A DNA stretch of 64,000 bases from Trichoplax adhaerens. Lineage: Eukaryota > Animalia > Placozoa. The translations under genes were made by a program, and so were the position numbers. This document shows, in pieces, positions 19,367-61,748 of the stretch. The first letter of the stretch is position 1, and each line of letters opens with the position of its first letter. Under the pieces are notes generated by a model that saw only the letters and a list, made by a program, of their open reading frames with translations, had not been told where the DNA came from and did not search any database. Location: contig NW_002060965.1 of the NCBI RefSeq assembly GCF_000150275.1, positions 825,834 to 889,833 on the forward strand, in the 5' to 3' direction.

Positions 19367-21244
19367 TCAGAATAATAATTGCTTTTTCAACAACGTTATT
19401 TGCTGATCATTAAATTGATATAAACCAGGATAATGTAATCGTTCAATTTCTAATTGTTTCATTAATAATTTTATGGCCAATTGGGCGTCTTCTCCTTGCA
19501 AATGGAATCGATCAGCTTTTTCACTTTGGTTTAATTTCTTATAATCGGATAAGTAATATGCAGCTAAATTGAAATGATGGCCTTGCCAGTAACCACTTAA
19601 ATTTTGATCCTTAGCGCCACATTGAAATCGAAATGAAATTGGCATATAAGCCATCTTACCAGGGAAACATCTCTTTCTAACATTTTCCATTAAATCCAAG
19701 GGGAAATTTAAATGTAAGTTATCATATTGCAGTATAATTGAGTTGCCATTACGAATGGATGATAGTACAGTATTGAAAGCAGATCTCCTAGCATACAATA
19801 ATCTTTCAAGGCTTATTTCCACAAATTGATACCTTTTAAGACTGCTATCGTATAACTGAGTTTGTAATTGTACACTAGCTTTCGATGAACCAACAACCAT
19901 TAATGTAAATTGGTCGTCATGAGTATGGTTATAATAACGTTCAAGTTGCCTTAAAAAAAATCGAAATGCATTAATATTTTCATTGGCAATCATAATAACA
20001 ATATAAACGTGAACTTTGTTATTCCACTGTAAATCGACAAGATTACATATTTTATCTGTACTACGATATTTATATAAATATTCCGAGATGCGATAGAGCG
20101 GCTTTCTAAATTTTTCTTTAATGATAATATCGACTAGATAACGACTTCCACGCGCACGATCTGATTTCTGTTCAACACCATGGACATGAACTAATTCAAA
20201 TTTCCCTTTATTTTTTTTATTAATATGATATAGAAGTGATTCAACTATGCGGTAAGCTTCTTCTTTCTCGAATTCATGAATGGAATTGCTGACATCATTT
20301 CTACTGGCGACAGGATTAAATCTTCCATAGATCTGATGCTGAATAGTGGATAAATAATACATAATGTTCACTACGTTAACACTCCGTTCAGGTGGTACTA
20401 CATAGCTTGGACGACCATAAGAGCAGAATTTTAATGCTTCATCCAGATAACGTCGATTTAATCGTGGTAATAAATGGAAACTTTGATTGAATTTAGCAAG
20501 TTGTTCTAGCGACTTAATTGCAATCGTTGGTGTTCGAGGAGAAGTTGAATTGACTGTTGGACTATGATGGCGTGAAATTTTGATATAATTGGAAGGTAAT
20601 GAGATAGATCGTCGCGATATAGTATGATATGTATTGGATGGATCAGTTCGAGACATTTTCCAACCGACCTTGATAAATCCTCGACCAGTGGCACGTGTAT
20701 GTATAGCTTCGATCCAATATTTTCTTCTACTATCTAAACGGATAAAATTGGAAATTTGTTGATGTTGTTGCTTATTTTGCTTAGATTGGAATAATCGATA
20801 GTCGACTTGAGCAATTTTTTTAGCATTATCAGGATTAGTATCGTGACTAAGCCATAGCTCAGCACCATCATCAGCAACGATAGCAAATTGATAATAGGAT
20901 GTCACTTCAGGATGGATATAGCCGAAAATTCTTTGGCCATGACTACCGCCATCAAATTGCGATTGGAATTGATCAATGGCTTGACAAACGGTTGGATTAT
21001 GAGGGAAAGTCGATAGTTTTCTTAAATCGCCTATATGATTAAGACAGTTATCGCTACTTTCCCAACGATACAAGCATAAATTGCCTCTTGTATTAACTTC
21101 TTGAACGTTTCCTTCATGGCATTGACAATAAGGCATTGAAATTAGATCTTGAGCTCGATTAAATTCTCGCGTGTAGAGTACTATTAAATATAAAATGCCA
21201 ATCGATAATAGGATAACCAATTTACTCTTACTAATCTTGGTCAT
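19367..21244 (-). CDS. B4GALNT3/4-like PA14 + GT7/CHGN glycosyltransferase paralog 1; catalytic motifs degenerate, PA14 DD intact
   Basis: 625-aa single-exon ORF with an N-terminal TM. PA14 region reads 'GQRIFGYIHP..YQFAIVADDGAELWLS'. It has 'VEQKSDRARGSRYLVD'. Catalytic positions are altered: YDNLHLNFP (vs DLH), HLQGED (vs WGGED), and no terminal His cluster. Confidence 0.88.
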   Translation of the reverse strand: MTKISKSKLVILLSIGILYLIVLYTREFNRAQDLISMPYCQCHEGNVQEVNTRGNLCLYRWESSDNCLNHIGDLRKLSTFPHNPTVCQAIDQFQSQFDGGSHGQRIFGYIHPEVTSYYQFAIVADDGAELWLSHDTNPDNAKKIAQVDYRLFQSKQNKQQHQQISNFIRLDSRRKYWIEAIHTRATGRGFIKVGWKMSRTDPSNTYHTISRRSISLPSNYIKISRHHSPTVNSTSPRTPTIAIKSLEQLAKFNQSFHLLPRLNRRYLDEALKFCSYGRPSYVVPPERSVNVVNIMYYLSTIQHQIYGRFNPVASRNDVSNSIHEFEKEEAYRIVESLLYHINKKNKGKFELVHVHGVEQKSDRARGSRYLVDIIIKEKFRKPLYRISEYLYKYRSTDKICNLVDLQWNNKVHVYIVIMIANENINAFRFFLRQLERYYNHTHDDQFTLMVVGSSKASVQLQTQLYDSSLKRYQFVEISLERLLYARRSAFNTVLSSIRNGNSIILQYDNLHLNFPLDLMENVRKRCFPGKMAYMPISFRFQCGAKDQNLSGYWQGHHFNLAAYYLSDYKKLNQSEKADRFHLQGEDAQLAIKLLMKQLEIERLHYPGLYQFNDQQITLLKKQLLF

Positions 21245-24779: not shown

Positions 24780-26990
24780 GAAATAATGAGTATATTCTTT
24801 CTTCAATCACTTCCTTACCAATCCATGATCCATAAACCGTTATCGAGTTCATTTACGGAAATGAAATTGCGCTTTCCCTACATTGGAATTTACACGTAGA
24901 ACTATCAATTCCGTCATTAGACGTGTACGGAAATGATCACTATACAGTATAATTAATGCTTCTTTATCGACCATGTCCTTGTCAATCTAGGATCATCATA
25001 CTAGATCACTAATGCTTCTTTTAATAATTCATTAGACTGTTGGCGAGTTTATTTACAGAAATGAAATTACTTCCTTCCTACGTTGTATTTTATGCGTATG
25101 TAGAACTGTAAATTTCATCTCTGAATGTGTCAGAAAATCCTACTGTATCATTTATGCTCCTTGTTCATCCCCTGTCTTACCAATAAATAATCCAAAAGTA
25201 GTTATCGAGTCTATTTACGGAAAGAGAATTTCTTTCTTACTACACATTAGAACGATAACTTATACTACTAGATGTGTATAGAAATAGTCATGATAGAATC
25301 CACCATACTCCTTCATCCATCTCTTCTTTGCCAGTAAACAATCCATAAGACTGTTATGAAATTGACTTCTTCCTCTATTACAAGGCGTCATACTTCAGTT
25401 TATGATTATAAATTCTATCCGTATATGTATAATTTATATGCCCCTTCTTCAATCGCTTATTAGCCAATACATAATATAGAAGACCGTTATCAAGTATGGA
25501 AATGAAATTGGTTTCCTGCCATGTTGTAGTTTATGTAGATTATAGCGTATGGATAGAAATGGTGATCATCAAACTCACGCTCTCTTTTTAATTACATCCT
25601 TGTTAATGAGCGTATAGGATCCATAACGCTGCTATCGAGTCCATTGATGAATACGAAATGGCTTCTTTTAGAACCTAAAGCTTATTCCCACCCCGCTGAG
25701 CTAGAGGAACAGATTATATATAACAATCATTTCTATCACAATACGACATACGTATTCGCATGTCTGGAAATGATGATCATAACGCGCTGTCTTCCATAAA
25801 TTCTTTACCAATAACTAATCGATAACACTACTATAAAGTGGCTTTATGGCAATCAAGTTGCTTTCTTCTAATCCGCTAATCCAATCGATTACTTTATAAA
25901 CCACTTTACCACTTTGTGCACGTGAAAATAATAATTAACATACAACACTCTTTCTTTCAAAGCACTTTCTTGGCAATAAACTTATCAATGCTATCGAGTT
26001 TGTTTACAGCTGTGAAATTGCTTCTTTCTCTTCAATTGATCCAATGACATTGTAAGCTACTATAGCACGATACTCTTTCTTCCAAGCTACTATCCCAGCA
26101 ATAAATGACCAACGACTTGCTATCGTATTCATTCACGGCAATAAAACTGCCTCTTTCTGTCCTGTGATCCAATAGATTATAAACTATTCTACCACTTTAT
26201 GTGAATGAAAAGAATGAACAAGTAACACTTTCTTTCAAGCAACTATCCTGATAAAAAAAGTTACCAGCAACATTGCTATCGAGTTCATTGACGACAGTGA
26301 AATTGCTTCTTTCTATCCTCTTGATAGATTATAAACTAATCTACCACTCTATATGCGTATGAAAAGTAAGAACAAACAAACTCTTTCTTTCAAGCTACTA
26401 TCCTGGCAATAAATTGCCAATAACCCTGCTATCTCTTAACGACATTAAAAATTGCTTCTTACTATTCTGTTGATCCGATAGGCTATAAACTACTATATCT
26501 TGAATGCCTATGAAAATAATAACCACTCTTTCTCCCAAATCACTAATCATGGCAATAAATTGTCAACAACCCTGGAATCAAGTCCGTGTACAGAATTAAA
26601 AATGGCCCACTTCATTTTCGTTGATCCAACTGACGACTCTAGATACCATCTAATGAGTGTGTAGTGTAGGCGAAGAGAAATGACAGAGGAACAGACTAAA
26701 TACCTTATTCCTTCCTCAATTGATTCAGTCTATTACCTTACAAGTAGCTACTCGCATAACATGAAAATAATCATCACTAAAAACGTATTGAACTTACAAC
26801 GTATACGGAAATTCAGCAGGCAATTGCTGTTTAATGGATCCAATGAATCCTTTCCACACAATTTTAGCTACCACACGCAATCGATCTTCGCACAATGCTT
26901 TTCTCCTAACTAAATCTTGACAATAAAATGTCAATAATACGATCATAGAGTTCATAGGCCGGAACAAAAAATTGGCCTAGGACGACGATA
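24780..26990. repeat. Degenerate tandem array A, ~13 units of ~130-200 bp
   Basis: Recurring core 'ctg(t/c)tatcgagttcatttacgg..atgaaattgcttcttt' at ~24836, 25037, 25199, 25350, 25483, 25629, 25828, 25989, 26119, 26274, 26427, 26573 and 26940. Confidence 0.8.
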
Positions 26991-32599: not shown

Positions 32600-33030
32600 G
32601 AATTTTACTAATACGGAGTGTGCATAACTTACTGTTGGAAGGGATTTTTAATGACTAACAAAATTGATAGCAATTGCACCTTAATTAATCACGATGATTA
32701 ACCACGTAAAATATCAGATCAGCATTGTCCTATATGGACATGAAGTTCTACTTGGACACAAGCTAATTTAAAATAGTGTAATCTTCCTTATTTGTTCTGT
32801 AGAACCTCAACAGCGATTGTATCATAATCACTGTTATTAATTAATGCTATTAACTGCATAGGATATCGAATTGGCAATGACCTAGTCCATTTCGTTGTCA
32901 TTAAACGTAAGTTAATTTAAGATGGTGTAATCTTTCTTGTTCCAATAGTCCATTGAGGGAATCTGCAACGATTGCATGATCATTGCTATCATTAACCGCC
33001 CGAGATATCCAATTAGTGCGGCCTATACCC
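32600..33030 (-). repeat. Up to three decaying tandem copies (~150 bp period) of the last ~42 codons of paralog 2, downstream of its stop codon
   Basis: 33023-32901 translates to GRTNWISRAVNDSNDHAIVADSLNGLLEQERLHHLKLTYV*, versus the native GNAYSISRAVDHRDSGAIVADFINEPLEQERLCHPKLTYVQV*. The next copy ends RLHYFKLACVQV. Confidence 0.85.
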
Positions 33031-33048: not shown

Positions 33049-34956
33049 TTATACTTGCACATAAGTCAGTTTTGGATGGCATAATCTTTCTTGCTCCAGT
33101 GGTTCATTAATGAAATCTGCCACGATTGCACCAGAATCTCTATGATCAACAGCACGAGATATCGAATAAGCATTGCCCTCATTAATTATCTTAAGTAAAT
33201 CACTCGAGTAATAAGCAATAGCATCAAACTGATTCATTTTCCATATGCCGTTTGGTGCGGCAGAGTTGTGCCTACATCGTTCCTGGAAAGGAATAGGTAA
33301 ATAAAATGATTTTCTCCTTATGGATCTTTTTCTAACATTATCCAATAAATCGTCTGGTAATTGTAATTTGATATCATAATGTAAAACTATTGATTCAAGG
33401 TCAACGATACGTGATATAACACCTTCTAATCCAGCTAACAAGGTATAATTGCAATAAGGACTAAGTTGGATGATCTCATGTCGGATGAATAAGCTTCGTT
33501 TTAGAATCTCTTTAATCGCTGGATGGATTATTTTGCAATCAATTATGTACAATTTAAAGAAACTATCACGGCTGCTGTTGTAATATTGATTCAGTCGATG
33601 GACAAAGTTGGTAAATAACAAATTAAAAGTCGGACCATAATGTCGATGGTCAAGCATTAAGACTATATTAACATTAGTTGTTGGATCCCATTGTAGATCA
33701 CTCAATTGACATAATGTTTGTAAATGCGAAGAGTAAAATAAGTACTCAGAGACTCGCCAAATTCGTTGATTTACTTTCGATTGGATGACTAAGTCAACCA
33801 AGTAACGTTTCCCTCTTTGTTGATCAATTTTTTCTTCTATCCCGACAATTTTGAGCAACTTATATTGATGCTCTGCTTCATGTTGATTCAATTTATACAT
33901 AAACTGATTGGCAATTTGATGAGCTAATCCTGGATCGAGTAATCGATTACAATGAATAATATGGTCGCCATATTGAGTCATGACAGTAAATTTTCCATAA
34001 ATGCTGTACGGCACTGTAAGTAGAAATTGCATTAGTTGACGATATCGACCGCGAAATCTTTTGCTAGCGATGACATAGCTAGGATTGCCATAAGTTGACG
34101 CAGGTAATGCACCAGTAAGAAAATGTCGTGGCAAAAATGGCAAGGTATGATATCGACTTGAATAGCTGGCAGGATCGTTATTGCTTGCAAAATCAATCGA
34201 TTTCTGCTTAGCTGGTTCTTGTTTCTGTGGTAAATATTTCGAGGAAGATTTATCTATCGTAGACGGTAAAAGGTAATTGTTTGGATCTGGCATAGAGATA
34301 GAATTTCCCTGGATAGGTAGGTAACTACTCTCAGTTTTATTACGAAATTGATATTTCCAACGGAGTTGAATTAATCCTTCAGGTGCAATCATGGTATATA
34401 AGACTTGAATATAATATTTACCAGGTGCAGTTAGCTTCATTTTTTGAGATTCTATCGATGGATAATGATTAATAGAGTGCTTTTCCTGTTGCTTAGCTGA
34501 TTCTTTCGATTGATCATGGTATAGAATTCTAGCTGCATTGGAAGGATTTTTGTTTGTGCTAATCCATAATTCTGCTTTGCCATCGGTTGTCAGTGAAAAA
34601 GTATAATCACTAGTCACAGGTGGATGAATAAATCCAATAATCTTCTGACCATAGCTAGTTCCCACCCCTTGCCATTGAAATTGTTGGATAGAGAAACAAG
34701 TGGTAGGATGTAATGGAAAAGAATGTAATTGACGTAAATCGCTGATATTATTAACGCAATTACTATTAAATTCATAATTCCATTGGTGAACACACAAATG
34801 GCCTATGCTAGATCCGGTCAAGTTTCTCCGCTTACATTGGATGCCTACGATGTATTTTAGAATGGATTTGGATGGATTTTGACGAAAATAGATGAGAACT
34901 GTGTTGAGAATCGATATAACAATGGCAATAAATACACAGAGTCCAAGAAATTTCAT
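33049..34956 (-). CDS. B4GALNT3/4-like PA14 + GT7/CHGN paralog 2; probable pseudoenzyme
   Basis: 635-aa single-exon ORF with a TM. PA14 region 'YGQKIIGFIHPP..TTDGKAELWIS' and 'EEKIDQQRGKRYLVD' are present. YDIKLQLP replaces DLH and WGGED is absent. It ends ERLCHPKLTYVQV. Confidence 0.87.
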   Translation of the reverse strand: MKFLGLCVFIAIVISILNTVLIYFRQNPSKSILKYIVGIQCKRRNLTGSSIGHLCVHQWNYEFNSNCVNNISDLRQLHSFPLHPTTCFSIQQFQWQGVGTSYGQKIIGFIHPPVTSDYTFSLTTDGKAELWISTNKNPSNAARILYHDQSKESAKQQEKHSINHYPSIESQKMKLTAPGKYYIQVLYTMIAPEGLIQLRWKYQFRNKTESSYLPIQGNSISMPDPNNYLLPSTIDKSSSKYLPQKQEPAKQKSIDFASNNDPASYSSRYHTLPFLPRHFLTGALPASTYGNPSYVIASKRFRGRYRQLMQFLLTVPYSIYGKFTVMTQYGDHIIHCNRLLDPGLAHQIANQFMYKLNQHEAEHQYKLLKIVGIEEKIDQQRGKRYLVDLVIQSKVNQRIWRVSEYLFYSSHLQTLCQLSDLQWDPTTNVNIVLMLDHRHYGPTFNLLFTNFVHRLNQYYNSSRDSFFKLYIIDCKIIHPAIKEILKRSLFIRHEIIQLSPYCNYTLLAGLEGVISRIVDLESIVLHYDIKLQLPDDLLDNVRKRSIRRKSFYLPIPFQERCRHNSAAPNGIWKMNQFDAIAYYSSDLLKIINEGNAYSISRAVDHRDSGAIVADFINEPLEQERLCHPKLTYVQV

Positions 34957-37849: not shown

Positions 37850-38560
37850 ACTAGCTAGTGATTGATTGCTAGTAGAATCATCATAATATGTTATCGCATG
37901 CTAATGATGTTATTTTGTGATGATAATGCAATTTTACATTTTTACTCGATATTGGGCCATAGCAAGTGATAATTGAGCCGAAATAACAACAACATCAAAG
38001 GTTTGAATTATGGCCATTCTCATTCTTGACTTGGTGAAGCAGAATCAACAGTTATATCTTTCCATAATAATTATAATGCTGGTTTTTACTGCAGGTTTTA
38101 CTTGATATCGGATTGTAGTAAGTGATCGATTAAGCAGAAATGGGCAATAAGTACGAATGAAAACATTGATTGATGGATCGTAAATATTCGTAACTGATCA
38201 AATAAAGTAATCGGTTGCTAATAGAAATCATCATAATATTATTACGTTAATTAAATCCTTCCATGATGATCTGGTAGTTGTTCATTTTTTGCCTGATACT
38301 GGGCTATGAAAAATAATTAGATGAATTGAGATAATAATAAACTATATTGAGAATAACAATCTATCGTAGTTTATTCGTAGTTTTATGAAACTGAATGATT
38401 AGTTATGAATAGGGATCGCGATAATACTCGTATTTTCCAACACTAATCATACCATTTGGTTGTAATAGCGTTATTCCAGATTTTCATTTGTTATTGAATT
38501 ACGGTTTGTTTCGTATGGAATGAATTGAATAAAAATGGCAATAAACAATAATAGGAGTAC
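37850..38560. repeat. Degenerate direct duplication, ~350-380 bp period
   Basis: Collinear shared blocks: 'ttgcta.tagaa.tcatcataatat' (37866/38215), 'gata.tgggc.at' (37947/38295) and 'aaatg.gcaataa' (38138/38533). Confidence 0.65.
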
Positions 38561-40882: not shown

Positions 40883-42877
40883 TTAATTTTTCCAATTCAA
40901 TTTACGATGAAAGAAATGGAACATCCCAGGGTGGCAAAGCCTCTCAATTTCCATTTGATGTTTTAGTATTCTATCAGCCATTTCAGAATCTTCGCCACCC
41001 CATTTAAATTTAAATTTTTCAACTTCCATACCACCAAGAGCATCATAATCACCTTTATAATAGGCCATAATACCGAATCCATCTCTTTCGTAGAATCCGT
41101 TAGGATTGGATAAATTATGCCCACAATATAATCGAACAATAATGGGCATATAAACACTTCTTTTTCGAATACATCGTTTGCGAATATTATCTAATAAATC
41201 ATGAGGGAAATTAATATGTAAATCATACTGTAATACTATACTTTCGGGATCATCGATACTGCGTATAGCAGTATCCATACCGATCGTTTTAGAGAAATTT
41301 TGATAATCTTTATACATAGGTATGACTTTATAATTTTGTAAAGGGCTAGCTTTCAATTCTTTTAATACATCCAAATTTTCATTAGAATCACGGCCAAAAT
41401 CAGCAATAATGACACTAAAATGTTTATCGCCAGTTTGGAGGTAGAAATTACTTAATTCTTTGATAAAATAACGCACCCAACGTGATTGGCCTTTAACAGC
41501 CAAGCAAATATGAACATGGGTAATAGGATTCCAGACCACATCACTGATTAAGCAAAGAATTTGTGAAACTTTACGATGATAAAAGTACTCGGAGATGCGT
41601 TGAATTTTTTGGTTGGTATTATCTTTGACTACCAAATCGAATAAGAGTCGGCTACCGCGACGAGGATCGACTTTCTCTTCAACGCCAACATTTTCTATTA
41701 AGGTATATTGGTTGCGATACTTATCATTTAAAGCTGTCATAAATCGTGCAACAAGTGAATTGGTGCGTTTTGCACTGGCGATACGATTACATGATCGTAA
41801 GCGGTCACGATCAAATATTTTATAATCGAATTTACCTTGGACCATGTGTGCAATTTCTTGTAATTTATTGACAGCACCATAAGTGCGTAATCTAGTTTTC
41901 TTCGTGACAATGTAAGTGGGTCGAAAGTAGCGACATGTCGGTAAAACAATGAGATTACGATGAGCTATTTTAGGTATAACATGATAGTTACGACTAAAGT
42001 TGCTTTCTGGCTTACGAAATACTTTACTAATGCCAATACCTGGTTTGACAAATCGTTGGACCATATGACTAGGTGAATGATAATTCGGTGAATGAGGAAA
42101 GAGAGATAAGTAATCTGTATGAATGGCTTGAGGCAAAGATTGAAAACGACCATTAAAATATTTCCACCTTACTTCAACATATCCCTTGGCTAAGCGTTGA
42201 CCATGTAATACTTCAACAAAATAAGGCCGATTAGCGTATAAATAAAACCAGCCCGATAATTGTGTCTCAACCCATTGCCATCTTTTCTCAGGGAATTCGA
42301 CATCCCACGGTCTTTGCCATGGCTCTACCCAAGCGATCCTTTTGGCTTTGCTTGGTTGAGTACCATTACTGAGCCATAACTCGGCGAAACTATTGGTAGT
42401 TAAGACAAAGGCATAATAACCATCTTTAGGAGGATGAATATAACCAAATATTCGTTGACCATAAATTTCAAGATCATAGAAATAGCGAAATTGATTTATA
42501 GCATGGCAAACTGAGGGTCGATTGGGGAAATATTTCAATTCACGTAAATCATCGACATCTTCTATACAATCGGTGAAATTCTCCCACCGATATAAGCATA
42601 ATTTCCCTCGGCCACGAGTTTTATCATTAGGATCGATATTACAAGGGCAACCATTTACGTTGTTGATGTTGTGATTATTGGTATTCTTCTGATAATTATT
42701 GTTATCGTTATTGATTTGGTTAATTTCCATTGTAAGATCATGAATCGTTTCAGATTGTATACTTGATCGTGACGTTGAGAAAAATGGTTTACGCTGATAG
42801 ATTAATAAAATAGCGAAATCGATCACAGCAGCAAGTTGTAATAATAAAAGAAATTTAATCACCGTACGTTTCATCAT
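40883..42877 (-). CDS. B4GALNT3/4-like beta-1,4-N-acetylgalactosaminyltransferase paralog 3; catalytic motifs intact
   Basis: 664-aa single-exon ORF with a TM, an Asn-rich stem and PA14. The GT domain has FSKTIG, YDLHINFP, GFYERDGFG, KWGGED and ERLCHPGMFHFFHR, matching the B4GALNT3/4 C-terminal pattern. Confidence 0.92.
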   Translation of the reverse strand: MMKRTVIKFLLLLQLAAVIDFAILLIYQRKPFFSTSRSSIQSETIHDLTMEINQINNDNNNYQKNTNNHNINNVNGCPCNIDPNDKTRGRGKLCLYRWENFTDCIEDVDDLRELKYFPNRPSVCHAINQFRYFYDLEIYGQRIFGYIHPPKDGYYAFVLTTNSFAELWLSNGTQPSKAKRIAWVEPWQRPWDVEFPEKRWQWVETQLSGWFYLYANRPYFVEVLHGQRLAKGYVEVRWKYFNGRFQSLPQAIHTDYLSLFPHSPNYHSPSHMVQRFVKPGIGISKVFRKPESNFSRNYHVIPKIAHRNLIVLPTCRYFRPTYIVTKKTRLRTYGAVNKLQEIAHMVQGKFDYKIFDRDRLRSCNRIASAKRTNSLVARFMTALNDKYRNQYTLIENVGVEEKVDPRRGSRLLFDLVVKDNTNQKIQRISEYFYHRKVSQILCLISDVVWNPITHVHICLAVKGQSRWVRYFIKELSNFYLQTGDKHFSVIIADFGRDSNENLDVLKELKASPLQNYKVIPMYKDYQNFSKTIGMDTAIRSIDDPESIVLQYDLHINFPHDLLDNIRKRCIRKRSVYMPIIVRLYCGHNLSNPNGFYERDGFGIMAYYKGDYDALGGMEVEKFKFKWGGEDSEMADRILKHQMEIERLCHPGMFHFFHRKLNWKN

Positions 42878-48764: not shown

Positions 48765-50660
48765 CTAATCATGACGATATTGTCGAAATAGTAATGGGTA
48801 GCTAGTCCTTTCGATGTCTAATTCATTTTCTATCAACTTTCTAAGTAGCATAGCAAAAGCTTTTACAGGCTTGTCTTGATGAATAATCCCTTGATAATCA
48901 CTGATATAACAAGAAAGGATATTATAATAATCACGATCAACGTATCCATCCGGTCTTTGGAAGTTGAATCCGCAGTTTAAATTAATAACCAATGGCGCAA
49001 AACATTGTCTACCTTCTATCGTCTTTTTCCGAATCTCTTGCATCAACTGGCTTGAAAAATGGACAGCAGGATCAAAATAGAATAGGATACTATTAGTCAG
49101 ATTAATAGGCTGTTGAAGAACCTGTTTTAACGGAGAAATAATATCACTTGACTGGGCAGTATCGTCGATCCAGAAATATTTTTTCTTTAGTCTACTTTTC
49201 TGTAATTTCGCTTTAATCTTAGGAGTACTTGTAAACCCCTTGTCTATAATCGTAAGTGTGAAGTAATCGCTATCTAGGCTTTGGGTATACCATTTCTCGA
49301 TTTCCAGGACTGCTCGTAGTACAAGTGAATACTTGTGATCATGATTAATCATCATGATCATATTCACAGGTGCAGTGTTGGACCATTGAAAGTCGGCGTC
49401 ATAACACCACTGATGATTGGTTTTATTTTTGTAAAAGTACTCCGACAACTGGTAATGTTGGCTACCTTGGGCAACTTTTAGTTCGATAAAATATCGACTT
49501 CCTGCGGATGGATCTAGCTTCTCTTCAACGCGAATAGTCTGTAACAATGTTAGTGGTTTGCCTATCTGGTTATAATAACTCTGATATCTTGTAAAGATGT
49601 CTTGAACAACGCTTTTAGCAGCTCCTTGAGCTAGAGCAGGAATTAATTCAATCTTTCCACGTACAGGAGAAATATAGCTGCGAAATTCATCACCAAATAC
49701 ACGATATGCTACCGCCATAACTTGTTGAAAGCGATTTCGAGTTGTCAATAAATAATTAGGAAGGCGATTATGACAGTATTGTAAGCTACTAGCATGAATG
49801 ATACCATCCGATATTACGAATCGTTGGAGATGATAAAATTGAACGATTCGATTAAGTTGGTAATTAATTTGGTAAGGTAGATGAAATGATTTCCAATCAA
49901 TTTTCCACCCTTCAACGTGATGGCTAGCTTGTTTCTGAGCTACCGAATTGGCTATATCATCTTCTTGCAATAATGATATATGACGATGACTGATTACGCC
50001 TAAATTTTTCTCAATTTTTCCATCATAATATTTCCATTTGACTGCTAAAAATGATTTTGTATTACCAGTCACTTGTAAAAGCTCTATCCAATACTGACGA
50101 CCTTTTTCCATATAAATCCACGGGCTTTTTGTTGGTAATTTAATCCTCAAGTTCATCCTTTGCGAACCTAGAAAAGTATGAGCAATACGAAATATATTCC
50201 GACTGGTATTATCTCGACTTAACCATAACTCGCAGCTGGATTTACTGACAAGTTCAAATGTGTATAAAGCGTTGAATGGTGGATGAATAAAACCTACTAT
50301 TCGGTTACCAACGTTAACTGGCGACTGATCAACTTGTAGTCTGTCTACTGACCGACAATGTAAAGGTTGGAAAGGAAATGTCTTTGCTTCCTTCAAATCA
50401 TCGATATGCTCTAGGCATCGATTATGATTAATCCATTGGTATAAGCATAATTTACCGTCGAAATCTTTAGGTGTTTGTCCCTTGCAATGGCACGAAATTG
50501 AGCCTACCTTGGACTTTATCCTTAGTGCGCCTAAGTTGGTCTGATTGAAATTATTAATCAATAACTGCATAGGCCGGCGGGTATCACTTCCAAAATCAAA
50601 GTAAAAAATAACGATAAATATAATGACAATCAGTTGTAAAAATATAAATTCCACCTTCAT
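48765..50660 (-). CDS. B4GALNT3/4-like PA14 + GT7/CHGN paralog 4; probable pseudoenzyme, most divergent
   Basis: 631-aa single-exon ORF with a TM. 'GNRIVGFIHPP..SKSSCELWLS' and 'VEEKLDPSAGSRYFIE' are present. FDPAVHFS replaces DLH and there is no GFG or WGGED. Confidence 0.86.
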   Translation of the reverse strand: MKVEFIFLQLIVIIFIVIFYFDFGSDTRRPMQLLINNFNQTNLGALRIKSKVGSISCHCKGQTPKDFDGKLCLYQWINHNRCLEHIDDLKEAKTFPFQPLHCRSVDRLQVDQSPVNVGNRIVGFIHPPFNALYTFELVSKSSCELWLSRDNTSRNIFRIAHTFLGSQRMNLRIKLPTKSPWIYMEKGRQYWIELLQVTGNTKSFLAVKWKYYDGKIEKNLGVISHRHISLLQEDDIANSVAQKQASHHVEGWKIDWKSFHLPYQINYQLNRIVQFYHLQRFVISDGIIHASSLQYCHNRLPNYLLTTRNRFQQVMAVAYRVFGDEFRSYISPVRGKIELIPALAQGAAKSVVQDIFTRYQSYYNQIGKPLTLLQTIRVEEKLDPSAGSRYFIELKVAQGSQHYQLSEYFYKNKTNHQWCYDADFQWSNTAPVNMIMMINHDHKYSLVLRAVLEIEKWYTQSLDSDYFTLTIIDKGFTSTPKIKAKLQKSRLKKKYFWIDDTAQSSDIISPLKQVLQQPINLTNSILFYFDPAVHFSSQLMQEIRKKTIEGRQCFAPLVINLNCGFNFQRPDGYVDRDYYNILSCYISDYQGIIHQDKPVKAFAMLLRKLIENELDIERTSYPLLFRQYRHD

Positions 50661-52624: not shown

Positions 52625-54598
52625 TCAAATATGAAATAAGAGAGCAACATTAGCAACAAAATCGTCTACGGTACCTTTCTTCCATGGTAATCGTCGATGA
52701 AAATGATGATATAATTTGGGATGGCAAACGCGCTCAATATCGTAATGATGATAAAGTAATTGATTAAGGAATGCAGAATCTTCACCACCCCATCGATAAC
52801 GAAACTGTGATGCATTATAACCGCCAATACGCAGAAAATCCTCTCGATAAAGTGCCATAATACCAAATCCATACTCTTCCCATTCCCCATTTGGATCATT
52901 CGGTGATGCATTACAGTGTAAGCGTAGTAAAATGGGCATATAGACAGTTTTACCGGGAAAGCAACGCTTACGAACATTGTCAATTAGATCAAGAGGTAAA
53001 TTTAAGTGTAAATCATAAGCTACAATAATGCTGCGACGATTATTAATGGCTTGAACGCCAGCATTGATACCAGCACTTCGACTAAATCGTTTATGTTTAC
53101 GTCCTAATTGGACTAACTGAATTTTCTTAAATGAGCTGCTACGCAATAAGGCTGGAATGTCGATGTCGGTACTGCCGAAATCAACCAAGACAACACTAAA
53201 ATATTCATCATGGCTGGTTTGATAGTATTGATTAACTTGATGAAGAAAATATTGAACCCAGTAACCCTGCTGCTGAATCGCTAAAATAATGCTAACATGA
53301 ATCTGTTGATTCCATTCAAGTTGATTAATTCGACATAATTGCTTAGATTCCTTGTTTCGATAGAAATAGTCTGCAATTCGCCAAATTGCCTTACTCTTAG
53401 AATGTTGGATTAACATTTCTATAAAGTAACGATTACTTGCTCTAGAATCAATTTTCTCCTCTACATTAATAATTTCAACAATAGAGTAGGTACGATTTAA
53501 TTTAGACCTCAAGTTGGTCATATAATCTGTAATAATGGATAGCGCTAATGGACGACTTAACGGCGAATTACAAGCTACAGCTTTATCGTCATTATAGTAT
53601 ACAAAATCGTTTCGACCATAAAACCGATGATTACGCATTAAATACACGAATGTTGGACCTTGTAAATCTACCATTGGTTTAGTAATTCTTTGTATGTTTG
53701 TTGGTGTAGAATAAGGACAATCGGGTAAAATTTGTCTTCGAATTTCAACATCTAGTAATGACTTTAAGGATAGCAAGGATTGGTTATTAACGGTAACATG
53801 ATGTTTAACAATATTTAGTTTCTTAACTTGGCTACCAAGTCGGACTATTCGCTTTGGTTGATGGCTATTGGACTTGTAACTGCATTGACGTGGTAAGGAT
53901 AAAAAAGAACTGTTAATTACCTGAAATGATGTTTGATTTCGACCATCAAAGTATCGCCACTGGATAATTACATTTCCTTTAACTTTAGCCTGTGTATGAA
54001 GAATTTCTATAAAATAATCTTCTTCCCTTTTTAAGGCTACTATATTACTTGATTGATCATCAATTTGCCAACGACTTTTAGTGACAATATGTTTAAGATG
54101 AGAAGGATTATGATCAGTGCTTAGCCATAATTCAGCAATGCCAGTTGTATAAACGCGAAACTGATAGTACGCCGTTTTAGGTGGCCTTAGTAGGCCAAAA
54201 GCGCGTTCACCATATAGTTCTAATGGGTAAGACCATTGAGTTTGATTAACCCATGTATGCAATGTTGGATGATTCGGAAATGATGAAATTTCTTTTAAAT
54301 CATCAATTTCATGGATACAATCATGCAGATCTTCCCAGCGGTATAAGTAAAGTTTACCATGCCTAGTCATCGATGGATGACTAATGCAATAGTCCGATTG
54401 TGCAATGGGTGGATGATGAACTAATTTAAGTTTCCATAATCCTTCAAAGTTAGGCTTGAAGCAATCATTTAAATGGAAGTGAATTAATTTATAACTATAG
54501 ATCATAATAAGTAAGAATAAGATTAATGCCATGATGACTAATTGACGATTTAACGCATTAGCCATGATGATAGAAATCACATGTGCTTCCTGCTTCAT
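52625..54598 (-). CDS. B4GALNT3/4-like paralog 5; catalytic motifs intact
   Basis: Single-exon ORF. The track starts at GTG 54610, but the first ATG is at 54598 (MKQEAH...). It has a TM, PA14, FSRSAG, YDLHLNLP, GEWEEYGFG, RWGGED and YHHFHR. Confidence 0.92.
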   Translation of the reverse strand: MKQEAHVISIIMANALNRQLVIMALILFLLIMIYSYKLIHFHLNDCFKPNFEGLWKLKLVHHPPIAQSDYCISHPSMTRHGKLYLYRWEDLHDCIHEIDDLKEISSFPNHPTLHTWVNQTQWSYPLELYGERAFGLLRPPKTAYYQFRVYTTGIAELWLSTDHNPSHLKHIVTKSRWQIDDQSSNIVALKREEDYFIEILHTQAKVKGNVIIQWRYFDGRNQTSFQVINSSFLSLPRQCSYKSNSHQPKRIVRLGSQVKKLNIVKHHVTVNNQSLLSLKSLLDVEIRRQILPDCPYSTPTNIQRITKPMVDLQGPTFVYLMRNHRFYGRNDFVYYNDDKAVACNSPLSRPLALSIITDYMTNLRSKLNRTYSIVEIINVEEKIDSRASNRYFIEMLIQHSKSKAIWRIADYFYRNKESKQLCRINQLEWNQQIHVSIILAIQQQGYWVQYFLHQVNQYYQTSHDEYFSVVLVDFGSTDIDIPALLRSSSFKKIQLVQLGRKHKRFSRSAGINAGVQAINNRRSIIVAYDLHLNLPLDLIDNVRKRCFPGKTVYMPILLRLHCNASPNDPNGEWEEYGFGIMALYREDFLRIGGYNASQFRYRWGGEDSAFLNQLLYHHYDIERVCHPKLYHHFHRRLPWKKGTVDDFVANVALLFHI

Positions 54599-56430
54599 TT
54601 TTACAGCCACTATACTGTATTAGATGGTTTAGGATCTATTGCATAGTTAGCAATGTAACGAGATCCAGAATCTGAGATTTTGAGCTTTCCTTTCCTTTAG
54701 TCTACTTTATTTGGAAGCCCACGCCAAGCGCGATATCATACACACGTTAACGAAACATAAGAACTGTGACAACAAATCAGCTCTAGTACGAACATAACTT
54801 TAATACTATATCCTAATGCACGTGAATATTTGTGGCATGTGATCTTAATCTAGTAAAGTAGATAAGGTGTAGATAAACCGTAAATACATATATATATAAT
54901 AAAATTAAAAATAGTATTGTACGATATCTAGGATTCCCAACGTTCTATGGCGCATACACTACAAGGTAACAACCAGTAGTTTACAGGATAGGCGATGTTG
55001 CGACAAGCAACACTGGTGCAATGAGTAGGCTTGTAATGTGTCGACAATTAATAAATAAACCATAACCAGATGGCTACCACAAATTGATTCGTATTTGAAA
55101 GATCTTTATACAAGTTAATCCTATTTTTAATGACTTTATATATAATTAAACCATTCTTGGCCATCCAATGAACGACATAGATATTTCTGGAATGGATAGA
55201 TTTGTTAAGATTTAGACTTGGTTGAAGATTTAAATGTATCGCGTTTTCTCTGCATTTCTCGAAGGTAATGATAATGGCAAGAGCTAGTTTTAGAAGATTA
55301 TTATGCGGCTCTTATCATTTTCATTTGTTCTTCTCAATAATACTGATGTTTTATAATAAGCATAGCAACATTTTTGTACTAGCATGCCATTGATGGAGCA
55401 TATTGTGCCATTTCAGCTTCTGCGGCGATTAAATTGCGGTGCAGCTGTTGCCATTTCCACTCCATCATAACGGTAAAATTAGCCAATGCAAGGCCTACCG
55501 AAAGATCACATGATACCTATCATTACTATTTCTAATTCTTCCTATATATACTACAAGAACAGTTTCTTTTAAAATAACTGGCCATCGATGTTAAAATGAT
55601 TCTGAAAGTAGTATATAATCCAAATCAATACATGTAATACTATTACTATTCACTTGATAGCATCATACCTGTTAGTTACGTTATATCCATCACGATCGGA
55701 TTTTCTACCTTCAAAAAATCTTTCTTTCGCACGTATTATTACGAATTACGAGTAAATGGTCTCATCCACACAATTTAAGTAAGGATTTTAGGTAAAACAA
55801 AGAAACATATAAGGAAATAAATCGATATCTAATTTCTAAAAATGGATAAAGTATAGATGTAGAATCAATCACCCAAACTTAAGATACAGAACTGAATAAA
55901 TTGGATACTTTTTTATTGATGTAGAAATAATTCTCAAAGCATTCTGATATACTGTAGTATAAGAAATTAATATATGAGTAATGTTTTGCCCATTTATAGA
56001 TAGTATCAAGCTTGTAAGTTATTGCCTTTAAAGAATTTGGATATTTAACGTTAATCTCTTTCAATATAAAGCTGGATATTAATTGATTATCCTTTCTCAA
56101 TATCAAGAATTTTAATACCTTGAGAACATGGAAAATGGATCCAACGCTATTAGTTATCATCTAGCTCCCGAAGACCGATAAGTCGTACGTATAAATGAAG
56201 AATAAGTCGATGATATATACAATTCTATGAATTGCAAATTGTTTACACTAGATCTTGATTTTATTCAGACAAGATACTCGTATTAACCTTTCATCTGCGT
56301 AAAATCTGAAGATAAACATCGTATGGTTTTATCATTTTCGATATAGGCCTGCACCAATATCGATTTATCCGAAAGGAAAAGTTTCATCCATAATAATGTA
56401 AAATTATTGCGACGTCAATTCATTTAGTAA

Positions 56431-58386
56431 ATGGATTTAACTTTCGGTATAAAAATTAAGCTGGCATTCAATATTTCAAGAACTATTTTGATACTAATAC
56501 TAATACTAGAAATCTTCCTATTATACTATCTATACGATTATAAATCTTACAAGTTTTCTAGTCTAAAAAGATTTATTCAAAATGCAAGTATAAAAATCTC
56601 TCGAAGCAAAGAATGGAAAGATAAATCACCTGATATAAGATCTGTAAATTTAACTTGTCAACTACGCAATTCTAAAACTCCTAATATTAACTACGATAAA
56701 TATCTGTATCATTATCGATGGGAAAATTTACAAGATTGCATCTCCGAGATTGATGATATGAGACAACTAGCATCATTTCCGAACAGACCAACTTCTTGCC
56801 AGCTTGTTAATCTAACCCAGTGGTCTAATACAATGGAGTTGTATGGAGAGAGAATATTTGGTCTCATAAGGCCACCTAAAACTGCTTATTATCAGTTTAA
56901 TGTTATTACTACCGGAGAAGCTGAGTTATGGTTAAGTAATAGCTCACATCCAGCCCAGTTAAGGCGTATCATTAGCATTAAGCATCAAGATGATAGTAGA
57001 CGTGAGTTAATTTCTACTTCAGTTCCTCTACAGGAAAATCGATCCTACTTGGTTGAATTTTTGCATGCAAATATCGCTATGAGAGGATATGCTGCAATCC
57101 AATGGCGATATTTCGATGGAGCTACTCGTACTCGATTTGAATTCCTCGATAAGCGCTACCTTCGCTTACCATCGTCTCCAATCTATCATAGCAATAGCAG
57201 AAGCCACCAAATCTATAGGATAAATATTGGCTATCAAGAAGTTCGAAAATTAAATATAACAGTGGCAAATAATAACTATACAACATACACACAGCCATTA
57301 CTTGATGCAGTAATGACACGCAATCTACTACCTAAATGTCATTATGTAGTGCCATCTTATATTAGCCATCATAGAAAACCAGTAAAAGACTGGGAAGGGG
57401 ATTATCTTGCACGAGGTATCGTTAGGCATCGATTTTACGGCCGACTAGACTTTATTAGTTTAAATGGCGATAAGGTTCAACGGTGTAGTCCTCAACTGAA
57501 TAAAGCGAAAGCCTTGTCCATCGTTAATCGGTATATGCAAGCATTGGATAGAGCATCGAATCGCACTTATAAATTAATTAAAATTATTGAGGTAGAAGAG
57601 AAAATAAATGATGGTCAAGGAAAACGTTATTATATTGAGTTATTACTGAAACGTTATGATTCTCACCTGTTATGGCGTGTATCTGATTACCTCTATTTGT
57701 CTAATCAAAATTCTCAATTATGTAAATTAATAGACATGGAATGGCATCAACGTATTCATGTTTATGTCGTTATTATTGTTCAACAGCAAGGCCAATGGAT
57801 TAAGTACTTTCTTAATCAAGTTAATCGATATTATATTCAGAGTCATGATGAGTATTTCAGTATTATTATAGTCGATTTCGGTAGTACAGATATTAATATT
57901 CGCGATGAACTCGATCGTAGTCCATTAAAGAAGTTTAAAATAATTCAACTCGGTAAGAAATATCCTAAATTTATTAAAACGATTGGGTTAAATACCGCAA
58001 TCGAGGCAATCGATGATCCCAACAGTATTATATTAATATTCGATTTACATTTTAATTTTCCTATGGACATACTTGATAATGCTAGAAAGAGATGTTTTAA
58101 GGGTAAAACCGCTTATACACCTATCATACTACGATTAAATTGTTATGCGACACCAAGTCATCCTAACGGATTCCGAGAAATTTTTGGCTATGGTATATTA
58201 GCCATGTATAAATATGATTTCAAACGTACTGGTGGTTACGATAGTGTTAATTATCGAGAGCAATGGGGAGGCGAAGATGTTCAGATGGTTAATTCTATTT
58301 TTACTCATAATTTAGATGTAGAACGAGTTTGCCATCCTACTTTATATCATCATTACCATCGTTCTCTACCATGGAAGCTTGTGTAG
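56431..58386 (+). CDS. B4GALNT3/4-like paralog 6 (inverted orientation); catalytic motifs intact
   Basis: 651-aa single-exon ORF with a TM, PA14, FDLHFNFP, GFREIFGYG, QWGGED and YHHYHR. By eye it is closest in sequence to paralog 5. Confidence 0.92.
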   Translation: MDLTFGIKIKLAFNISRTILILILILEIFLLYYLYDYKSYKFSSLKRFIQNASIKISRSKEWKDKSPDIRSVNLTCQLRNSKTPNINYDKYLYHYRWENLQDCISEIDDMRQLASFPNRPTSCQLVNLTQWSNTMELYGERIFGLIRPPKTAYYQFNVITTGEAELWLSNSSHPAQLRRIISIKHQDDSRRELISTSVPLQENRSYLVEFLHANIAMRGYAAIQWRYFDGATRTRFEFLDKRYLRLPSSPIYHSNSRSHQIYRINIGYQEVRKLNITVANNNYTTYTQPLLDAVMTRNLLPKCHYVVPSYISHHRKPVKDWEGDYLARGIVRHRFYGRLDFISLNGDKVQRCSPQLNKAKALSIVNRYMQALDRASNRTYKLIKIIEVEEKINDGQGKRYYIELLLKRYDSHLLWRVSDYLYLSNQNSQLCKLIDMEWHQRIHVYVVIIVQQQGQWIKYFLNQVNRYYIQSHDEYFSIIIVDFGSTDINIRDELDRSPLKKFKIIQLGKKYPKFIKTIGLNTAIEAIDDPNSIILIFDLHFNFPMDILDNARKRCFKGKTAYTPIILRLNCYATPSHPNGFREIFGYGILAMYKYDFKRTGGYDSVNYREQWGGEDVQMVNSIFTHNLDVERVCHPTLYHHYHRSLPWKLV

Positions 58387-59759
58387 ATAAATTACTGAGT
58401 TACTTAGCAAGGAAAGAATTGTAATGGAAACATTACAACGATAGAGTACGGCGTGTAGAACAGAATTCTTACACCGTAAAAGACTAGTTTATTACTCTTT
58501 ATACAGAATTACGTATATATCTAGTTATAGATACTAAACTTATAGTATTGGATTACATACGAGTAAGTTCATTCAAGTTTTCTTCGCTCTAATACTCCTG
58601 AAACGTATAGCTTACATGGTATGTTTAAAATAAAACATTATTAAAGGGTAAAAATTATTCTCGAATGTTGCCATGATAGTTAGATTAACATCCCGATATT
58701 CTACTATCTTCTAGATAAAGATAGCGATTTAATTTTACTGTGCTGGAACTTCTATAATAAAATGTCTCCAATTAGACGTTACTATTTTCCTAGAATCCTG
58801 TCGTAACTAATAGGCGGACAATATTATCCTGTATTTTCTTAATATAGATCTATAAATGTACTAATTCTAATACAGCATCTTATATGAAAATTATAGAACG
58901 CCTTAAACTTAACTTTACTCGTCTTGAATATTGTCATAACTGATACTTTTAATAGAAAATTATATTGCTTCTATATTTATTTATTAACGATTTTGACGCG
59001 TGAATCGGGTATAAATTATACTTGATATGTTATTTTTCTATTTTTAGTTTATCCGATAAGATCATATAATCGTCATATTGTAACTACGGCGTAGCTGTAA
59101 ACTATGCATTGTGTATTTAATCTATAGATGGTCAATATTCGAATATTATTTTGTCTGCATAAATAGCAGTAGCGTTTTGGTCGATATTCTTTCAAATGCT
59201 AAGATCAATCTATTGTAAATTGATTAAGAAACTAATCAGGGTACTTTCATATAAATATATTCGAAGATGCAAAGGTCTTTATTAACTCTACTTCTCTGTT
59301 ATATGGAAGCAAACATTATAATTATCAAACAATTGCCAATAAAATATGGTTAAACTTAGTTACACTTAGTTAGTTAGATAAGGAATTAACAAAAACAAAA
59401 TGAAGGAGATTTTATCTCGAATAATCTATCTTTCACTTATCCAAAAAGGAATAGATTTAATTTTAAAATTCTAAAAATTAATCAGCAATGGTATTGTAGT
59501 CTTTAAGGAAGTCAGGCAGATTCAATCACGTAATATATTAAAAAATAAGCTTATTTTTAATATACGAATACGCATAAGCCTATCATGTAGCATTTCTATC
59601 GGAGTACACAACTTTACCATTCGATAGTGCATAGATTAAGGATAGATTATTTAGGAACGGATATAGGACCTGATATATTTACATTCTTACTGGTTCGATT
59701 TTATAGTAGTATGAATAATCTACATTAGCATAAATACGTGTAAAGTAAATTGCATGGTA

Positions 59760-61748
59760 TCATGCTTGAATTTCTTTTATTTTTTTAGGCTCATTAACAT
59801 CTTTGTTTTCTTCCTCTTCTTCTGCTATAACTTTCTTCCAAGGTAGTCGACGATGATAATAATGAAAGAAATATGGATGGAGAAGTCTTTCAATTTCTAA
59901 TGAATTAGATATCGTACGATCTGCTATATCAGAATCTTCACCACCCCATTCAAATTGATACCTTTTATCATCCATGCCACCGATATTAACGTAATCCGAT
60001 TTATAAAATGCAGCTATACCGAATCCCCATATTTCAGGATAGCCATTCGGATTTCTTGGTGCAAAGCCACAACCTAATCTTGTTACAATCGGAAAATATG
60101 CTGCTTTTCCTTGCTTACATCGTTTCCTAACATTATCTAACATATCGACTGGAAACGTAAGATGTAAATCATACATTAATAGGATAGCATCATCGTTACG
60201 AATCCATGTAGCTGCACTATTGATTGCTGCAGTTTTAGAAAATTGAAAGTTTTCAGTTTTAATGTTCATGTAATGGTGTTTTAGCGAGCTTGACTTCAAT
60301 AACGCTGGAATGTCAACATCAGTACTATTGAAATCGGTGATAATAAGGGTAAAATGGTCATCATGAGTTTGCTTGTAGTAACGACTTAATTGATTAATAA
60401 GATAGCGTATCCATTCTCCTTGTTGTTTAATTGGAACTATGACATAGACTGGAGTCTTTGGATCCCATGATAAATCTGTCAAATGGCATAATTTAGCTTT
60501 TTTAAATGACATTGGTTCTGTACTTCGTTGAAAATATTCCGAAACACGATATAATTTATTTTCTGTCGTATCCATTAAGACAGCTTCAAATAGAAAACGA
60601 CTGCCACGTTTTCCATCTACTTTTTCTTCGATATTATGTACTTTAACTAATTCGAAGCGACTCTTAGATCTCTTCTTTAAAACTTTCATAAATGCTTTCG
60701 TTAGACTGTGAGCTACTTTACTGGGTAAGATAGCGTTTGTAGTTACCAAGTTATCACGATAAAATGTCCTATAGTTAAAATGGCCATAAGCACGATGAAT
60801 AATACGTTGAAGATAGAATGGTGCGGTATACGATTTAATAGCTTTACCCGGTTGTAAGACATAACTTGGAGGTTTATATCTACATTTCGATTTAATATCA
60901 TCGAGATATTTCTGATCCAACATAGGTAACAAGTGGAATTTCTTAGCAAATGGGACATTTTCTTTTTGCTTCTTATACCATATTTGTAGGCCATGACCAG
61001 CTTTACGAAAACGTTGAACAATATAACCGGGCATGTTGTAGATGTAATTTTTTGTTAAGGACAAATATTGGCTACTAATAATTGTATACTTTGAATTTGG
61101 TCGTTGGCTTTTCTTCCAAGCAACCTGAACAAATCCTTTTTTGTCCGCTTGTGCATGTAATACTTCAATAGAATACTTTTTATTCGCTTCTAAATAGATG
61201 TGGATAGATTCTTGATTTTGAATTAATTGAAATTGATTAGGTTTAATTTTTTGCCATGGTCCAATAAAGGCGATTTTTTTCATCTTTTCAGGGCTACTAT
61301 CAGGACTTAACCATAATTCAGCGATATCGTCGGCTGCGATAGCGAATTTATAAAATGCACTTTTCGGCGGATGTATATAACCGAAGAGGCGTTGGCCATA
61401 ATTTTCTGTGTCTTCAAACAGTTCTAACGAATCAACACTACGACATTTTGTGGGATTGTGCGGAAATAAACTAACTTCTCTCATATCGTCCAAATCATTG
61501 ATACAATATTTAAAATTAGTCCATTGATATAAGCAGATTTTTTTATCTGTTGTCGTTATGTTTCCCTTAGAATCGCGGTCGCAACGACATTGAACTTCGT
61601 ATTGGGTTGCAGGAGCTTTTTTAATCTGTGTATGAGATCGTTGAAATAGCCAATACGTACTTACAACGGATAAAATCAAGACTAGAATGATGATAAATTG
61701 AATAACAGCTATAGTCTGCCATTTGCTTAGTTTCTTTAGATTAATCAT
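59760..61748 (-). CDS. B4GALNT3/4-like paralog 7; both PA14 DD and catalytic motifs intact (most ancestral-looking)
   Basis: 662-aa single-exon ORF with a TM. It has 'ENYGQRLFGYIHPP..KFAIAADDIAELWLS', FSKTAA, YDLHLTFP, GYPEIWGFG, EWGGED and FHYYHR, plus a charged C-terminal tail. Confidence 0.93.
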   Translation of the reverse strand: MINLKKLSKWQTIAVIQFIIILVLILSVVSTYWLFQRSHTQIKKAPATQYEVQCRCDRDSKGNITTTDKKICLYQWTNFKYCINDLDDMREVSLFPHNPTKCRSVDSLELFEDTENYGQRLFGYIHPPKSAFYKFAIAADDIAELWLSPDSSPEKMKKIAFIGPWQKIKPNQFQLIQNQESIHIYLEANKKYSIEVLHAQADKKGFVQVAWKKSQRPNSKYTIISSQYLSLTKNYIYNMPGYIVQRFRKAGHGLQIWYKKQKENVPFAKKFHLLPMLDQKYLDDIKSKCRYKPPSYVLQPGKAIKSYTAPFYLQRIIHRAYGHFNYRTFYRDNLVTTNAILPSKVAHSLTKAFMKVLKKRSKSRFELVKVHNIEEKVDGKRGSRFLFEAVLMDTTENKLYRVSEYFQRSTEPMSFKKAKLCHLTDLSWDPKTPVYVIVPIKQQGEWIRYLINQLSRYYKQTHDDHFTLIITDFNSTDVDIPALLKSSSLKHHYMNIKTENFQFSKTAAINSAATWIRNDDAILLMYDLHLTFPVDMLDNVRKRCKQGKAAYFPIVTRLGCGFAPRNPNGYPEIWGFGIAAFYKSDYVNIGGMDDKRYQFEWGGEDSDIADRTISNSLEIERLLHPYFFHYYHRRLPWKKVIAEEEEENKDVNEPKKIKEIQA

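Follow-up and report, generated by a model that had tools for sequence, protein, structure and literature searches.

A cluster of seven single-exon PA14-GT7 genes

The analysed window comprised 64 kb of the Trichoplax adhaerens genome (G000:C1392:825834-889833, with a GC content of approximately 33% by base composition) and contained a cluster of seven genes without introns. The genes encode relatives of the vertebrate LacdiNAc synthases B4GALNT3 and B4GALNT4, in which a PA14 domain is combined with a GT7/CHGN glycosyltransferase domain (PA14-GT7 proteins). The listing of open reading frames (ORFs) contained exactly seven of at least 300 amino acids (aa) in the whole window, and all of them belonged to this cluster. 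Each ORF extended over 625-664 codons as an uninterrupted single frame. At approximately 33% GC, stops account for about 7% of random codons, so that an open frame of 625 codons would be expected by chance with a probability of about 1e-21. An earlier note on this DNA, made from the sequence alone, had listed the same seven single-exon ORFs, and every one of them was recovered at its position. The cluster genes and the two domains of the most canonical copy are listed below in window coordinates.

19367..21244, minus strand: copy 1, 625 aa; PA14 Asp-Asp present; all three catalytic motifs degenerate
33049..34956, minus strand: copy 2, 635 aa; PA14 above the Pfam cut-off; Asp-Asp and catalytic motifs gone
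40883..42877, minus strand: copy 3, 664 aa; DLH and WGGED intact, first motif partial; no PA14 Asp-Asp
48765..50660, minus strand: copy 4, 631 aa; most divergent; catalytic motifs and PA14 Asp-Asp gone
52625..54610, minus strand: copy 5, 661 aa from GTG, or 657 aa from the first ATG (54598, codon 5); motifs intact
56431..58386, plus strand: copy 6, 651 aa; sister of copy 5; catalytic motifs intact
59760..61748, minus strand: copy 7, 662 aa; most canonical; PA14 Asp-Asp and three catalytic motifs
61101..61391, minus strand: PA14 domain of copy 7, residues 120-216 (Pfam PA14 37 bits, GLEYA 28 bits)
59847..60707, minus strand: CHGN/GT7 catalytic domain of copy 7, residues 348-634 (Pfam CHGN 73 bits, Glyco_transf_7C 57 bits)

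The seven proteins aligned end to end, with 26-35% identity to copy 1 and 47 invariant positions. CHGN scored above the Pfam cut-off in all copies (25-98 bits against a cut-off of 23 bits), and Glyco_transf_7C was detected in copies 3, 5, 6 and 7 only. PA14 exceeded its Pfam cut-off in copies 1, 2 and 7. It was the top yet sub-threshold Pfam match in copies 3, 4, 5 and 6, which are called PA14-like because they can be aligned to the other copies, not on the basis of Pfam. The alignment contained the stem pattern L(C/Y)xxxW...C...FP..P, a CxC motif in copies 1, 3, 4 and 7, and a hydrophobic N-terminal segment in all seven proteins. The AlphaFold2 model of copy 1, built from a shallow alignment (predicted local distance difference test, pLDDT, 71.6), began with a helix spanning residues 2-35. 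A type II membrane topology with an N-terminal anchor is predicted for all copies from the hydrophobic segment and this helix. The membrane segment, cysteine-patterned stem and GT7/CHGN domain described as common to all seven in the earlier note were borne out, as was the presence of CxC in four copies. Its assignment of PA14 to every copy held by Pfam for three of them and, in the weaker sense of PA14-like by alignment, for copies 3-6.

The nearest named relatives were B4GALNT3 proteins, with those of birds showing approximately 35% identity across the catalytic half. A protein of Trichoplax sp. H2 is already labelled beta-1,4-N-acetylgalactosaminyltransferase in public automatic annotation. 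The structural search with the copy 1 model (Foldseek) gave CHSY3/CHPF chains as the best matches (9o4g and 9q8z, E 1e-14 to 1e-15), followed by PA14 lectin domains, and the best PDB sequence matches of copy 7 were also CHSY3/CHPF.

For the phylogenetic analysis, the best 150 representatives of an exhaustive profile search (969 proteins, E < 1e-30) were taken, and those with both domains were retained; the trees thus cover PA14-GT7 proteins only, with no CHSY or CSGALNACT outgroup. A quick mixture-model tree was followed by a second tree under LG+G4, which was rooted on Capsaspora and Pigoraptor and from which five rows that were either very gappy or very long had been removed. The paralogs formed one clade, as the earlier note had proposed. 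In the mixture-model tree, the seven cluster genes and the ortholog of copy 7 were united with a support of 100 in the Shimodaira-Hasegawa-like approximate likelihood ratio test (SH-aLRT), and the cluster clade received 100/100 in the LG+G4 tree. The cluster genes nested among animal and holozoan PA14-GT7 proteins, beside cnidarian sequences.

Catalytic motifs, age and constraint

The motif comparison revealed VDFxSxDxD, CDLH and WGGEDWE as common to PA14-GT7 proteins from Capsaspora to vertebrates. Since DLH is conserved over this whole range, it is the normal metal-site motif of the family and no deviation from it. All three motifs were kept in copies 5, 6 and 7, as well as in two dispersed intronless genes and an intron-rich gene on scaffold C1404, which are described below. 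Copy 3 retained DLH and WGGED, with the first motif partly changed (ADFGNENLD). All three motifs were lost or broken in copies 1, 2 and 4. Copy 1 had the remnants VVGSSKASVQ, D-N-L-H with an inserted residue, and LQGED; copy 2 had DIK where DLH was expected and a replaced WGGED; and copy 4 had DPA at the position of DLH and a deletion of WGGED. These three copies constituted one subclade in the LG+G4 tree (99/99). With the motifs absent from three of the seven proteins, a description of the cluster as seven glycosyltransferases that diversify glycans would overstate the number of enzymes.

In the PA14 domain of human B4GALNT3, D189/D190 together with Q251, N252 and E254 surround a calcium ion; the domain binds sulfated glycans and is required for activity on glycoproteins (PMC13018970, PMC11254600). 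Within the cluster, the PA14 Asp-Asp pair was kept only in copies 1 and 7 and replaced in copies 2-6. It was also replaced in both dispersed intronless genes, and it was present in Capsaspora, Pigoraptor, a sponge, one Nematostella gene and the C1404 gene. The pair was equated with human D189/D190 by motif and context, the vertebrate PA14 regions lying outside that alignment. Judged by both sets of motifs, the cluster would comprise four types of genes: a canonical enzyme (copy 7), likely enzymes with an altered PA14 domain (copies 3, 5 and 6), a dead protein with the canonical PA14 motif (copy 1), and proteins that have lost both (copies 2 and 4).

Trichoplax sp. H2 (GCA_003344405.1) carries all seven genes; their order and orientation are unchanged, every ORF is intact and free of gaps, and the nucleotide identity is 99.4-99.8%. 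The H2 annotation presents the cluster as single-exon genes except for copy 5, for which a 649-aa model over 2102 bp starts at the first ATG and has a short 3' intron spliced out. It also gives copy 4 a later start; the resulting 601-aa model begins 30 codons downstream and would lose the membrane anchor. More divergent orthologs, on placozoan-like contigs, were identified for two of the copies. The ortholog of copy 7 (P0001, on a metagenome contig of 31% GC) is a single ORF of 665 aa with 78% amino acid and 79% nucleotide identity. The ratio of nonsynonymous to synonymous substitution rates (dN/dS) between P0001 and copy 7 was 0.07-0.15, with dS of 0.8-1.9, which shows copy 7 to be under purifying selection. 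The ortholog of copy 1 (P0343, on a read-assembly contig) is a single ORF of 633 aa with 68% amino acid and 74% nucleotide identity. These two orthologs suggest that the intronless state, and at least the split between the copy 1 and copy 7 lineages, predate a deep placozoan divergence. A search for placozoan orthologs of all copies with a nine-sequence alignment as the query added no candidate to those obtained with a single sequence; with copy 2 as the query, no relative was found in the JGI metagenomes.

As judged from these sequences, the expansion belongs to Placozoa and not to Trichoplax adhaerens alone. The earlier note had suggested that the system could be lineage-specific. H2 carries the identical cluster, and the divergent contigs bear single-ORF orthologs of at least copies 1 and 7; the expansion is therefore not confined to the species.

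The degenerate copies 1, 2 and 4 could be decaying, non-functional relics of the expansion. All three catalytic motifs are gone from each of them, and the longest branches of the trees lead to copies 2 and 4 (the terminal branch of copy 4 measured 1.8-2.2). The codon differences between the H1 and H2 strains point the same way, with 14 nonsynonymous and 8 synonymous changes in copies 1, 2 and 4 versus 9 and 13 in the four motif-bearing copies. Decay is, however, difficult to reconcile with ORFs of 625-635 codons kept in AT-rich DNA that has a stop frequency of about 7% among random codons, and with the intact, gapless state of all three ORFs in H2. For copy 1, the comparison with P0343 (NG86, LWL85; dS approximately 0.8-1.2) gave a dN/dS of 0.18-0.23 for the whole protein and of 0.14-0.19 for the dead GT-like domain. 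P0343 bears the same degenerate catalytic motifs as copy 1, which indicates that the loss of the motifs is old and that the copy 1 protein has been conserved since. We read copy 1 as a conserved pseudoenzyme that has lost its motifs and is under purifying selection. The divergence between H1 and H2 is too low for an informative dN/dS of single genes and amounts, in copies 2 and 4, to 3-6 substitutions of either class per gene. Decay is thus excluded for copy 1, but it may apply to copies 2 and 4; as an account of the three genes together we consider it rather improbable.

Origin of the intronless genes

A profile of the seven copies was searched against the whole Trichoplax assembly. The family proved larger than the seven members of the earlier note: scaffolds C1405 and C1411 each contributed one more intronless paralog, and scaffold C1404 an intron-rich one. 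The two dispersed genes are as follows.

L011:1387-3375: full-length single-ORF paralog, 662 aa, with PA14, CHGN and Glyco_transf_7C
L012:1375-3267: full-length single-ORF paralog, 630 aa, with PA14, CHGN and Glyco_transf_7C

The intronless full-length members in Trichoplax therefore number nine, every one of them without any intron. The intron-rich paralog lies at G000:C1404:592302-596151 (locus L022), where collinear exon matches covered profile positions 76-640 in at least 16 exons. A GT-AG pair with an exact length fit was found at 12 of the 15 junctions, and a block of 13 exons gave a stop-free translation of 484 aa that carries DLH and WGGED. The model, which is without a resolved 5' end and one junction (L022 3868 to 4188), was entered into the alignment and the trees as exons joined from the locus coordinates.

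Three annotated proteins were mapped back to their genomic loci for the comparison of introns. The genes of Pocillopora (P0154, L027 3001-13466) and Ephydatia (P0340, L028 3001-12457) agreed in having 23 exons and in the whole succession of their intron phases, an ancient gene structure that has been conserved very well. The Nematostella gene (P0195, L023, GCA_932526225.1 OW051990.1, 10001-14112) had 4 exons, the first of which encodes 345 aa. When the genes were placed on one profile alignment, the coral and/or the sponge gene had an intron at the same column (±1) and in the same phase for at least 11 of the 14 introns resolved in the C1404 gene. The intron-rich structure is therefore older than the separation of sponges, placozoans and cnidarians, and the intronless form is the derived one. 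We infer that the ancestral animal PA14-GT7 gene was intron-rich, with approximately 23 exons.

In the mixture-model tree, all intronless placozoan genes fell on one side of a branch with a support of 94. In the LG+G4 tree, the eleven intronless placozoan rows formed a single clade (98/95), within which the C1405 gene split off first and the C1411 gene second, before the cluster. The C1404 gene grouped with sequences of Hydra, Nematostella, Montipora and Desmophyllum (97/97). Monophyly of the placozoan genes as a whole was not rejected by the approximately unbiased (AU) test (p=0.25). Since nine genes are free of introns and belong to one clade, a single complete loss in their common ancestor is the simplest account. 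The descent of a retroposed, intronless founder from an intron-rich ancestor, as put forward in the earlier note, is well supported by the shared introns and the intronless clade.

The intronless state probably arose through one complete loss of introns, most easily by way of a processed retrocopy, followed by duplication at the DNA level. According to this proposal, an intron-rich gene of approximately 23 exons was ancestral, and Trichoplax would retain one such gene on C1404. In the placozoan lineage, the intronless founder would go back to the reverse-transcribed, processed copy of one such gene, and DNA-level duplication of the founder would have produced the two dispersed genes on C1405 and C1411 and the tandem cluster of seven. 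Relics of a poly(A) tract or of target-site duplications are not expected, because the dS between placozoan orthologs is approximately 0.8-1.9 and the paralogs are only 26-44% identical. Assembly duplication was considered as a source of the copies and rejected. We assign a probability of roughly 0.75 to the account as a whole, namely a placozoan PA14-GT7 expansion founded by a retrocopy, in which some copies are enzymes and others pseudoenzymes.

Several points tell against it. The intronless clade joined the C1404/cnidarian group weakly in the LG+G4 tree (81/40), which makes the surviving intron-rich gene a plausible, not proven, parent; the intron-containing parent envisaged in the earlier note accordingly stands as a paralog of at least 16 exons in the same genome and is weakly linked as a parent. 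The contigs with P0001 and P0343 are short and are taken as placozoan from their nucleotide identity of 74-79% and a GC content of approximately 31-32%. For copies 2 and 4, the evidence for constraint consists solely of an intact ORF in two very close strains. The donor and acceptor specificity proposed below is derived from family membership alone, and the seven copies are known here only as DNA sequence.

Each gene could also have shed its introns independently, either singly or through gene conversion with partial cDNAs. Partial loss does occur in the family, as the Nematostella gene P0195 keeps 3 of approximately 22 introns, two of the three at ancestral positions, and looks like an independent case. 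Nevertheless, piecemeal loss would have had to clear every intron from nine full-length Trichoplax genes that form one clade, while the C1404 paralog kept at least 15 introns and the neighbouring genes in the window retained theirs. We regard this course of events as quite improbable. Horizontal transfer from a bacterium or virus, to which the lack of introns and the high scores of bacterial PA14-repeat proteins against the family profile might point, was rejected: the bacterial matches cover the PA14 part alone, without GT7, and the genes sit among animal PA14-GT7 proteins beside those of cnidarians, with a base composition that fits the surrounding genome.

Many high-scoring profile matches, of 1300-5000 aa and with 3-8 matched stretches, were without a GT7 domain. 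P0147 (Luteolibacter), the one such match whose source was looked up, is a bacterial PA14/cadherin-repeat protein. Raw profile counts therefore overstate the size of the glycosyltransferase family.

The family and the evolutionary mechanism are both known; what is new is the set of members, and the dead conserved subclade is its most original feature. Among the papers that could be searched, none was found to connect the B4GALNT3 family with Trichoplax or to describe placozoan retrogenes of such a kind. A paper on placozoan secretory cells (PMC11452194) mentions no glycosyltransferase.

The tblastn search for further relics of the family within the window identified none besides one fragment, which sits directly behind the stop codon of copy 2.

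32904..33023, minus strand: re-copied 40-aa C-terminal fragment of copy 2 (tblastn, 60% identity to copy 2 residues 594-633)

The genes next to the cluster had been described as intron-bearing in the earlier note. This was substantiated for the pantothenate-kinase (Fumble) gene at window positions ~13017-17116, whose Pfam model was matched in at least five separate exons. Two small genes are interspersed among the cluster members on the minus strand (window ~25813-26961 and 37027-38024). The H2 annotation assigns them products of 162 aa and 140 aa, with no Pfam match on record. Near-identical partial copies of genes 6 and 7 were observed just past the window (G000:C1392:891605-894902) and at G000:C1412:3-752. 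These scaffold-end partials comprise the 3' half of gene 6 (99% nucleotide identity) and the 3' part (94.6%) and 5' half (98.4%) of gene 7, and are followed by an N gap. They represent either a young partial duplication or a junction between the end of C1392 and the start of C1412.

Proposed function and comparison with known systems

From what is known of the family, the products would be type II Golgi membrane proteins. Copies 3, 5, 6 and 7 are likely to be active transferases. Their most likely reaction is the addition of a beta-1,4-linked hexosamine (probably GalNAc) to glycans that end in GlcNAc, and their divergent PA14 domains probably confer different acceptor preferences. Copies 1, 2 and 4 are probably non-catalytic, copy 1 being most likely a lectin-like or regulatory pseudo-glycosyltransferase. 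A more far-reaching proposal, which we put forward tentatively and consider unlikely in its full form, is a combinatorial system. The four active transferases would work with the dead copies 1, 2 and 4 as lectin-like escorts or regulatory partners, in the manner of CHPF with CHSY. Together they would set placozoan-specific patterns of glycans on the mucus or on the surface glycocalyx, the latter facing microbes and the many intelectins of the animal. The complex prediction for the catalytic domain of copy 7 and the GT-like domain of copy 1 gave a score of 0.04, which speaks neither for nor against binding.

The set would offer a clean and datable case, outside the bilaterians, in which a processed copy founded a gene family that then grew by tandem duplication, with an intron-rich relative surviving. 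The dead conserved subclade, together with the absence of the PA14 calcium-site motif from most copies, could serve as natural experiments on which half of the protein can work alone.

Vertebrate B4GALNT3 and B4GALNT4 are encoded by multi-exon genes. The order of their parts, a type II anchor, a stem, PA14 and CHGN/GT7, is the same as in the Trichoplax proteins. The vertebrate motifs, for which one named representative (a ray B4GALNT3) was available, also occur in the cluster: DFxSxDxD, CDLH and WGGEDWE are found in copies 5, 6 and 7, and copy 3 shares them with the first in partial form. A further likeness is the PA14 Asp-Asp of copies 1 and 7, equated by motif with D189/D190 (PMC13018970). 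In contrast, the vertebrate proteins measure approximately 1000-1500 aa and include a linker of about 400 aa, whereas the predicted Trichoplax proteins comprise 625-664 aa encoded by single exons. Unlike the vertebrate proteins, three of the Trichoplax copies are without catalytic motifs and five are without the PA14 Asp-Asp. The long proteins in the tree (1030-1491 aa, with two separated matches) formed one clade (100/100), the only named member of which was the ray B4GALNT3.

Continuous PA14-GT7 proteins of 559-858 aa, similar in their compactness to those of the cluster, were found in Capsaspora, Pigoraptor, hexactinellids, Ephydatia, Oopsacas, corals (among them Pocillopora and Montipora), Actinia, Hydra and Nematostella; lengths of 600-760 aa occur in Capsaspora, Pigoraptor, sponges and cnidarians alike. 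Tandem neighbours of the same family occur there too, with a PA14-CHGN gene upstream of P0195 in Nematostella and an adjacent opposite-strand paralog beside P0340 in Ephydatia. These relatives differ from the cluster in gene structure, with 23 exons in Pocillopora and Ephydatia and 4 in Nematostella; the cluster is without those introns and constitutes a long-branched clade of its own. The distribution of compact proteins across holozoans indicates that the compact form is ancestral and that the long vertebrate linker looks derived. Compactness, which the earlier note had regarded as a feature of the cluster, is thus shared with holozoans, sponges and cnidarians. A compact PA14-GT7 enzyme that predates animals, with the linker acquired later, may help to dissect how PA14 steers B4GALNT3/4.

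The CHSY3-CHPF pair belongs to the same CHGN family and, as described above, provided the best structural match of copy 1 and the best PDB sequence match of copy 7. CHPF is a non-catalytic or weakly catalytic paralog that works alongside an active CHSY, and is thus a precedent for a conserved inactive partner. CHSY and CHPF differ from the cluster proteins in having no PA14 domain and in carrying an extra GT31 domain.

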